Shown here: one piece after another, positions 13,997-15,821 of the stretch
Position numbering within the stretch: the stretch's first letter is position 1
Layout of the letters: each line of letters begins with the position of its first letter
Origin: Ministeria vibrans ATCC 50519
Lineage: Eukaryota; Protista; Filasterea
DNA length: 64,000 nucleotides
Direction: 5' to 3'
NCBI GenBank assembly: GCA_943704425.1
Contig: CALSCP010000368.1
Location: 3,069-67,068, forward strand
Program-made: the position numbers and the translations under genes
The notes under the pieces: generated by a model
Told to the model about the DNA's origin: nothing
The model's database searches: none
What the model saw: only the letters and a program-made list of their open reading frames with translations

Positions 13997-14168
13997 AGTG
14001 GTATGAAAGATAGAGAAGAGAGACAGAAAAAGGGGGACTAGTAGAGAAAGAGAGATTCGTCAAGCAAAGTAGTGAAAGTTTGAGAGTTGTCAGTTGTGAT
14101 TCTTGATTGAAAATTTGAAACTAAATCACATTTATTTTCATTTCTATTCTGACTTGCAGTCTTTCACA

Positions 14169-15752
14169 ATGCAAACAAACTCTCAACGCCAACAAGCACT
14201 TCTCCAGCGTCGCGCTCTACAGCGCCTTGCCGACATTCGTGGTGATGGTACTAGTCTCATTACCCTTCTTGTTCCTGGAAAGGAGCCTGTTCATCGTGTC
14301 GTCCAGGTAATTAAGACTTACGCTCAACCTCTCTTCAAAGTACTATCTCCCTGCCTACTGACCTTCGACCTCTCAAACATGTGACTGAGCTAAAAGAATT
14401 ACTCGTTCCATGTACTTATGTTGATCCTGTTACCCACTATCTTTCTTGCACAACTACAATCTATTCCATTTATTGCGCAACTTTTTCTTTTCAGCTTCTT
14501 CACGATGAAATGGCCATGTCGTCGCACATTAAGAGCCGCGTCAACCGCCAGTCGGTGCAAGAAGCCATTCAAGGATGTTTGTCAATTGTGCGTCAGTATG
14601 CGGTGCTCCCGCCTAATGGCTTGGCCATTTTCTCGTCGGGTCGAGCACTGAAAATCCGCGAAAGTCTGGAGCCTCTCGTGGCCATTCCGTCTCGCAAGTA
14701 CATCTGCGGCTCGACCTTTCACATCCCCGAGCGCATTCTCGAGGCCGCACACGGAGGCGACACGCGGGTGTTCGCCTTTGTCGTTGTGGACGGCCACGGG
14801 GCGCTCGTGGCGTCGCTGCAAGGACCGACTCGTCGCACGCTGGCACGCGTCACTTGCAACCTGCCTAAGAAGCAGAGCAACGGAGGCCAGTCCGCGCCTC
14901 GTTACGGCCGACAGCGTCTTTAACGCGCGCCACGAGTTTCTCGTGCGCGTCTCCGAGGTGATGTCGCTGCAGCTGCGCCCTTTACTCAGCACCGTCACGG
15001 CCGGCACGTCGACGGCGGGCGCGCCGCTGCACCTGGAGGGCATCATCATTGGGGGTCTCGCAGACCTCAAGAGCGAACTCCAAGAGGTCCTTGAACCGCG
15101 TCTGCGCCAGCGCGTTCTCATGCTCGTCGACGTGTCGCACAGCGGCGAGAATGGTCTGAGCGAGGCCATCTCACGCTCGGCGTCCCACCTCGAAGGCATC
15201 CGCTACCTCGCCGAACGCGATTCGATCCAACGCTTTTTCGACGTCATTGCCCGCGATCCCGACATGGCCGTCTACGGCCGTGCCGCCACACTGGCTGCAT
15301 TGCGCGCCGGAATGCTCACCCAATTGTTTCTCTGCGAAAAGAGCGTGAGTGTGAACACAACGCGTACGACGACTGCAACGACGACGACGACGACCACCAC
15401 CACCACCGCCGTGGTCGTGCCCAGCAGTAGTAGTAGTAGTACCACTTGTGAGGATCGTGATGGTATGCACATTTGTGGTCTTGTTGAAGACTTGCAAGCG
15501 ACAACCCTCGAGGGTGAGACGGGCGACGAAATGCTTGAGTCGCTGTTCCAACTGGCGCGAGAGACTAACGCGGACGTCAGTGTCGTCTCCATGGCAACGC
15601 CCGAGGCACAACAGCTGTACACAGGCTTTGATGGTTTTGGGGGTCTACTGCGCTTCCGGGGAGCAATGGATGCACTAGGTGGCACGGTCGAGAGCGACGA
15701 TGATGACAACGACGATTTGGACATGAGTGCGTACGAAGAGGAGTATTGCTAA
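14169..15752 (+). CDS. Divergent eukaryotic release factor 1 (eRF1) homolog requiring a +1 frameshift at 14918-14923
   Basis: Exon 1 14169-14306, intron 14307-14494. Motifs GDGTSLITL, SHIKSRVNR (NIKS), PPNGLAIF, YICGSTF, GGQS, DVSHSGENGLSEAI and GFDGFGGLLRF. The 0-frame ends at TAA 14921-14923 and the rest is in the +1 frame. Confidence 0.9.
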
Positions 15753-15821
15753 ACAATGAAACAAGAGTGTGTTTTGTGTCTATGTGTGTGTGTGTGTGTG
15801 TGTGTGAGTGTGAGTGAAGGT

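Follow-up and report, generated by a model that had tools for sequence, protein, structure and literature searches.

How can a gene for an eRF1-type release factor yield a complete protein when its reading frame ends at a stop codon ten codons past the GGQ motif? The question is raised by a 64,000-nucleotide (nt) stretch of DNA from the filasterean Ministeria vibrans ATCC 50519 (GenBank assembly GCA_943704425.1, contig CALSCP010000368.1, positions 3,069 to 67,068 of the forward strand), here called the window, to which all coordinates refer unless stated otherwise. An eRF1-like gene on its + strand (14169-15752) is interrupted by CTT TAA C, and a sequence-only reading had taken this for a programmed +1 frameshift of the kind used by bacterial RF2, and not for an assembly indel, an intron or a pseudogene. 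That proposal is now strongly supported by a break at the same codon in relatives and by purifying selection in both frames, and we put at roughly 85% the probability that the full-length paralogue of 464 amino acids (aa) can be produced only via programmed +1 ribosomal frameshifting.

The gene starts with the ATG at 14169, has a single intron, and encodes 188 aa up to the internal stop or 464 aa with a +1 shift, as the sequence-only reading had stated and as our gene model with a 188-nt intron reproduces. Exon 1 (14169-14306, +; 46 codons, including the GTS-type motif DGTS), defined by the listing of open reading frames (ORFs) and by the splice junction in a contig described below, is followed by a GT..AG spliceosomal intron (14307-14494, +) and by the zero-frame part of exon 2 (14495-14920, +), whose 142 codons complete the N domain and extend half-way into the M domain, ending with Leu (CTT). 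Neither exon has an in-frame stop between the ATG and the shift site. The GGQ motif for peptidyl-tRNA hydrolysis (GGA GGC CAG; 14882-14890, +), assigned from the sequence and the family alignment, is followed by SAPRYGRQR and then Leu, frame 0 reading GGQSAPRYGRQRL ahead of CTT TAA C. The break is at codon 189 (GGQ+10), in a cassette (14918-14924, +) made up of the Leu codon CTT for the ribosomal P site (14918-14920), the stop TAA for the A site (14921-14923) and a weak-context C (14924). From 14922 the +1 frame reads NARHEFLVRVSE and runs through 276 codons before it closes with the TAA at 15750-15752; this part (ORF2; 14922-15752, +) encodes the M domain's second half, a C domain carrying a poly-Thr/Ser insert, and an acidic tail. 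Re-reading the window thus gave the GGQ, the CTT TAA and the gap-free +1 continuation just as originally claimed.

Exon 1, exon 2 and ORF2 were used as separate pieces in searches and trees. The Pfam domain eRF1_2 is matched at profile positions 2-50 in frame 0 (39.3 bits, E 1e-09) and 76-131 in the +1 frame (33 bits; cut-off 27.1), and hence the break cuts a single protein fold. The C domain, eRF1_3, is found in the +1 frame (65.8 bits, cut-off 25.8, E 5.5e-18). Neither exon 1 nor exon 2 matched the N domain, eRF1_1, at E <= 0.01; the region aligns with family members that carry eRF1_1. Both halves align without gaps to intact eRF1, and no second lesion occurs across the 464 codons.

The three Ts at the site, whose presence the sequence-only reading left to be confirmed, recur in sequences from other sources. 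The genome assembly (29.7 Mb in 2860 contigs) derives from runs of 2011. An independent metagenome assembly (ENA ERZ23497376; contig L010) has the same CTTTAAC and differs from the window elsewhere by three single-nucleotide polymorphisms (SNPs) and the insertion of one ACC codon, differences that mark it as not the same data. Contigs of four other public runs were also aligned to the gene; these are contigs, not reads, so that rare variants would escape. One from run X7 (14291-15763) and one from run X13 (14658-15116) have zero differences from the window, and the X13 contigs leave the intron almost uncovered, that is, they are RNA-like. Among the contigs of the four runs, there was no gap or joint at the shift site. 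In a contig of run X18 exactly the 188-nt intron is skipped, and the gene is therefore transcribed and spliced. Run X18 (window 14142-14860) is labelled, with a query, as DNA, yet the precise absence of the intron implies that it holds cDNA or RNA-derived sequence. The gene is also present at 100% identity in runs filed under five organism codes (A-E).

Besides about 20 environmental sequences, three lineages that are named or can be named have breaks at the same codon, all as NTT followed by a T-initial stop and mostly then by C. A HMMER search with ORF2 against 1.84 billion representatives gave, besides ORF2 itself, a closest match of 31% identity. One of the matches (P0009) is Capsaspora owczarzaki XP_004364120.1, a protein model devoid of GGQ. 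In the underlying DNA (L011, KE346363.1), ORF1 ends with KGGQSSNRFARLRL at CGT CTT TGA C and the +1 frame continues with DARLHYVRRIAAL through to the end of the gene. To bypass the GGQ region, the model (L011:2001-3714) invokes an otherwise unjustified intron whose sole purpose seems to be to skip the frame break. A second Capsaspora-like species (L062), whose protein is 54% and 47% identical to that of Capsaspora, likewise has CTT TGA C; 22 nt at the site, GCGTCTTTGACGCACGCTTGCA, are identical in the two (L011 2874-2920, L062 1012-1105) despite saturated synonymous sites, which hints at a constraint on the nucleotide sequence beyond the heptamer. In Balamuthia mandrillaris (P0029, KAL6045447.1; L012:1501-3067, JAVKOQ020000163.1), the protein model again is devoid of GGQ and the DNA, on two contigs, has GGQSAPRFQRLRF, TTT TAA C and then NARHTY. 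The conserved CTT-stop and broken frame that the sequence-only reading had looked to orthologues for are thus found in Capsaspora and its relative L062, with TTT TAA C in Balamuthia and NTT T-stop in environmental sequences.

Other proteins matched by ORF2 consist of ORF2 alone, with N-termini (..GCVF, ..GSGF) that are the +1 reading of the upstream codons; their contigs have GTT TAG C (L014, L015) or GTT TAA C (L016) at the same codon. Such a +1-frame leader is also present in transcriptome-derived ORF2 proteins of Lapot gusevi and of the transcriptome shotgun assembly (TSA) entry GILJ01006795, and the break is hence retained in mRNA. Word-indexed protein searches added few further named taxa. 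Metagenomes were scanned with the DNA pattern K-[HQ]-x-x-GGQ-S-x-x-R-[FY]-x-R-x-x-NTT-TRR, which retrieved 20 contigs, all eRF1-like, 17 of them with a +1 ORF that continues the eRF1 M and C domains. In 14 of these 17 loci the +1 ORFs have 188-706 aa; in the others (L030, L033, L034) the +1 reading is recognisable as eRF1 for about 21-23 aa, apparently up to an intron or the end of the contig. The remaining, AT-rich contigs (L026, L036, L038) were rejected as frameshift cases: their TAA is in frame and frame 0 continues (..ARLRV TAA KRH..) at a Met/Glu junction, and they are canonical-looking eRF1 genes, probably from organisms whose code, of the ciliate type, assigns an amino acid to TAA. A candidate nearest relative (P0012/L061) was also set aside, its gene being intact. 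In two metagenome loci, L031:111-2228 (-) and L037:571-2529 (+), the +1 ORFs of 706 and 653 aa fuse the eRF1 M and C domains to a GTPase of the EF-Tu/eEF1A/eRF3 type (Pfam GTP_EFTU, D2, D3) downstream of the frameshift.

Both reading frames are under purifying selection. Compared pairwise between family members that both retain it, the two sides of the break gave ratios of nonsynonymous to synonymous substitution rates (dN/dS) of 0.06-0.19 for ORF1 and 0.06-0.24 for ORF2. Read in the +1 frame, the three SNPs between the window and L010 are all synonymous changes at third positions, and the indel is one in-frame codon. The low dN/dS of ORF2 together with the synonymous SNPs indicates that ORF2 is translated in the +1 frame. 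ORF2 has no conserved start codon, and its first Met in Capsaspora lies about 70 residues in.

Site composition was compared over 20 loci, counts from which are not phylogenetically independent. The P-site codon is CTT, TTT, GTT or ATT, NTT being followed by T in 20/20 loci. The stop is chiefly TAA, with TAG and TGA also used; the base 3' of it is C in 16/20 loci, a weak termination context cited for bacterial and viral cases (PMC5009743, PMC3521657), and the preceding E-site codon is CGT in 15/20. This constant NUU_U-stop form is what would be predicted if the P-site tRNA slips onto UUU while the A site awaits a release factor. In the same loci, columns upstream of the site display codon-level conservation only (Arg codons), with no purine-rich element resembling a Shine-Dalgarno-like stimulator. 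A local GC-rich hairpin 3' of the stop (14925-14950, +; -16.2 kcal/mol) was discarded as a conserved stimulator, with a z of -1.1 versus shuffles and no counterpart in Capsaspora or other family members.

These data bear on four other accounts of the locus. That a homopolymer indel was introduced in assembly or sequencing, the true sequence being CTT AAC, retains next to no probability: the 2011 source runs are small and may come from a homopolymer-prone platform, but TTT is present in three more data sets (two runs dated 2024 and 2025, and the metagenome contig, which has SNPs of its own), independent contigs that rule out an assembly indel in the T run, and the same break recurs in relatives from unrelated projects. 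A recent pseudogene, formed by a one-base T insertion into CTT AAC of a redundant, still transcribed eRF1 duplicate, would have exactly this sequence; the genome has a canonical eRF1, which could render the copy dispensable, and the copy is very divergent, with low-complexity inserts. Set against this are the same-codon break in Capsaspora, L062, Balamuthia and about 20 others, with differing stop and P-site codons, the purifying selection on ORF2 and the 464 codons clear of a second lesion, and we consider recent decay very improbable, if less so than an indel.

The frame might alternatively be corrected in RNA, by transcriptional slippage, editing or an unusual small intron, in a minor mRNA that contigs, which lose rare variants, could miss. 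The RNA-like contigs, however, are colinear over the site, the break is retained in transcriptome assemblies of other species, and runs of 3-5 Ts are short for polymerase slippage. As to an intron, the 21-nt GT..AG near the site does give the wrong frame, as originally noted, and the GT/GC..AG pairs that would restore the frame on paper all remove conserved codons (shortest 14) and are not used in the RNA-like contigs. Moreover, correction in RNA does not predict the constant NUU_U-stop form, as ribosomal P-site slippage does. Though the least improbable of the four, RNA-level correction is therefore a poor contender. Hardly better placed, and marginally behind it, is the idea of two separate proteins, with a functional 188-aa ORF1 product and ORF2 expressed independently or not at all. 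Gene callers do split the gene in two, and ORF2 in the window has an ATG 13 codons past the break; yet the first Met of ORF2 is not conserved, the break divides one fold, the eRF1 M domain, whose halves are gap-free against intact eRF1, and eukaryotic ribosomes would not be expected to initiate 750 nt inside an mRNA.

The sequence-only reading called this a eukaryotic eRF1 gene, which is correct for the type of factor but not for its role as the eRF1 of the organism. The canonical eRF1 lies in the same genome on another contig (C2037), with many introns, TASNIKS, YLCDNKF and no break, and Pelota is encoded on contig C1747. The window copy lacks TASNIKS and has instead MSSHIKS, with HIKS (14525-14536, +; identified in the translation) as a variant of the NIKS stop-codon recognition motif. 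Its match to the stop-recognition motif YxCxxxF is YICGSTF (14699-14719, +), of which Y, C and F are invariant columns in the family alignment; its N domain is shortened and a poly-Thr/Ser stretch has been inserted. Proteins that end at GGQ+10 have CIKS, SIKS, HIKS or QIKD, and chance fragments of canonical eRF1 from the same search have TASNIKS. The gene in the window is thus a divergent eRF1 paralogue, with HIKS for NIKS, and not the canonical eRF1 of M. vibrans. A search for a dedicated GTPase partner found several EF1-family loci in the genome. The low-complexity poly-Thr/Ser insert in the C domain (15362-15440) differs in length between strains, L010 having one more ACC codon, and a (GT)n microsatellite (15775-15812) lies just past the stop codon of the gene, where reads and contigs are seemingly cut.

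For programmed frameshifting in this paralogue, we infer a slip mechanism, a feedback and a function as follows. When CUU in the P site is paired with peptidyl-tRNA-Leu and the A site presents UAA-C, a forward slip of this tRNA by one base onto UUU would compete with termination; a ribosome that slips would decode AAC (Asn) and go on through the remaining M domain into the C domain, and ribosomes that terminate would release the 188-aa N-terminal fragment. Since termination and slippage would compete, low release-factor activity would lead to more full-length factor and high activity to less, as in bacterial prfB, and by this analogy an RF2-like feedback on termination activity is plausible. 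A canonical, unbroken eRF1 is present alongside, and the family uses all three stops; the site would accordingly gauge total termination capacity and not just its own product.

Several points weigh against programmed shifting with such a role. The shifted protein is a prediction from sequence, and the run data are contigs, in which a minor RNA species lacking one U may be missed. Across the 20 loci compared there is no conserved stimulatory element around the site. The window copy is the fastest-evolving member of the family (end branches 1.9-2.4), and its shortened N domain, below the Pfam threshold for eRF1_1, makes its release-factor activity uncertain. With three stops in the family and a canonical eRF1 present, strict RF2-like self-regulation cannot be assumed.

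One of the two closest precedents is bacterial prfB, with CUU UGA C, in which UUU is the slip codon in a minority of species and the site is present in many, but not all, members (PMC5009743). As in the window, a class-I release factor gene has an in-frame stop with C after it, the remainder in the +1 frame and CUU in position to slip onto UUU; the heptamer of Capsaspora, CUU UGA C, is identical to that of prfB. The proteins, in contrast, are unrelated except for GGQ, and the Shine-Dalgarno-type stimulator of prfB, absent from the window family, is impossible on 80S ribosomes. Moreover, prfB shifts at codon 26 and otherwise gives a short peptide, whereas the window gene would shift at codon 189, just past GGQ, and otherwise give a 188-aa fragment. 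Unlike prfB, the window family uses any of the three stops and coexists with a second, unshifted release factor.

Among eRF1-type factors, experiments in E. coli demonstrated +1 shifting for mimivirus R726, whose site is CUU UAG C (PMC3521657, PMC6582330), and Megavirus mg280 has CUU UAA C (PMC3521657). The mention of recoded mimivirus eRF1 in the sequence-only reading was accordingly well founded, and the Megavirus cassette is identical to that of the window (PMC3521657). Both viral genes also require read-through of an upstream UGA, a combination described as unique to those viruses and without a clear cellular relative (PMC3521657). Recoded eRF1 occurs in further Mimiviridae (klosneuviruses, tupanviruses), and TASNIKS substitutions are common there (PMC3521657, PMC6582330). 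The viral and window genes thus share an eRF1-type factor, a substituted TASNIKS and a CUU UAR C cassette, the last compared by published motif only; they differ in that the viral genes have upstream UGA-C read-through and a C-terminal truncation, and the window gene is free of upstream stops, has its acidic C-terminal tail in full and contains a spliceosomal intron.

Plant eRF1-1 is described as autoregulated by stop-codon read-through and nonsense-mediated decay (PMC5397192); like the window gene it is a cellular eukaryotic eRF1 gene in which stop recognition on its own mRNA sets the output, but the means are same-frame read-through and mRNA decay, with no frame change within the coding region. 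Antizyme (UCC UGA), Ty1 (CUU AGG C) and Euplotes (AAA UAA) also shift by +1 on 80S ribosomes where the A-site codon is slow; of these, antizyme forms a sensor-effector loop, and CUU is the slip codon of Ty1 (see also PMC5009743). These, however, concern other genes and other sensed molecules, and the shifts of Euplotes are genome-wide and non-regulatory, whereas here one site is retained by a single gene family. The literature found, including a 2016 review of frameshifting, described no frameshift in a cellular eukaryotic eRF1, an absence that is not proof. The existence of a conserved frameshift device at this codon, of a kind found described only for bacteria and giant viruses, is strongly supported.

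Whether the family arose once was addressed with trees of ORF1 and ORF2, both of which are poorly resolved. In the ORF1 tree the window copy is sister to Capsaspora (support of 94 in the Shimodaira-Hasegawa-like approximate likelihood ratio test, SH-aLRT), a placement consistent with a filasterean source, and the frameshift groups fall outside a large clade of canonical and viral sequences. A fast test under LG+F+G4 marginally disfavoured a single frameshift clade (approximately unbiased (AU) test, p 0.037); because archaeal rows nest among long frameshift-family branches, these trees neither show nor firmly reject a single origin of the frameshift. Close to frameshifted genes in the trees there are some intact ones that have RLRLE at the junction, a pattern that would suit disappearance of the shift from certain lineages, as is the case for RF2.

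A viral genome context was rejected for the genes studied here: the window gene has a spliced 188-nt intron and lies on a contig of at least 64 kb in a 29.7-Mb genome, and the Capsaspora copy is on a 2.1-Mb scaffold, flanked by PH-domain and leucine-rich-repeat (LRR) genes. Retrieval of 24 giant-virus eRF1 loci (19 + 5, some from the same contigs) gave only genes intact at the junction, and two DNA-pattern scans of viral contigs gave no match to the frameshift site. The 640-nt '5' untranslated region' originally annotated for R726 may be compatible with a viral site near GGQ. A broader scenario, to which we give somewhat less than even odds, is that many eukaryotes across supergroups (Filasterea, Amoebozoa, probably Rhizaria, and numerous uncultured protists) possess a second class-I release factor with an altered stop-recognition motif, gated by a +1 shift at one conserved codon so as to act as a gauge of termination capacity, fused to an eRF3-like GTPase in some lineages, and with the frameshifted eRF1 of Mimiviridae as its offshoot or donor.

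Autoregulation of a release factor by frameshifting is a textbook bacterial circuit which, as far as eRF1-type factors go, has been ascribed to giant viruses alone. If cellular eukaryotes, close unicellular kin of the animals among them, possess a conserved version, the bacterial and viral cases would be connected and a natural cellular +1 'shifty stop' would be at hand for studies on the 80S ribosome. The recoded mimivirus release factor, reported to lack a clear cellular affinity, gains in this family a candidate cellular origin. The models XP_004364120.1 of Capsaspora and KAL6045447.1 of Balamuthia hide the break, and both need re-annotation. Altogether, the gene points to an unstudied second release factor with a changed NIKS motif, present in Capsaspora, an organism that can be cultured and transfected.

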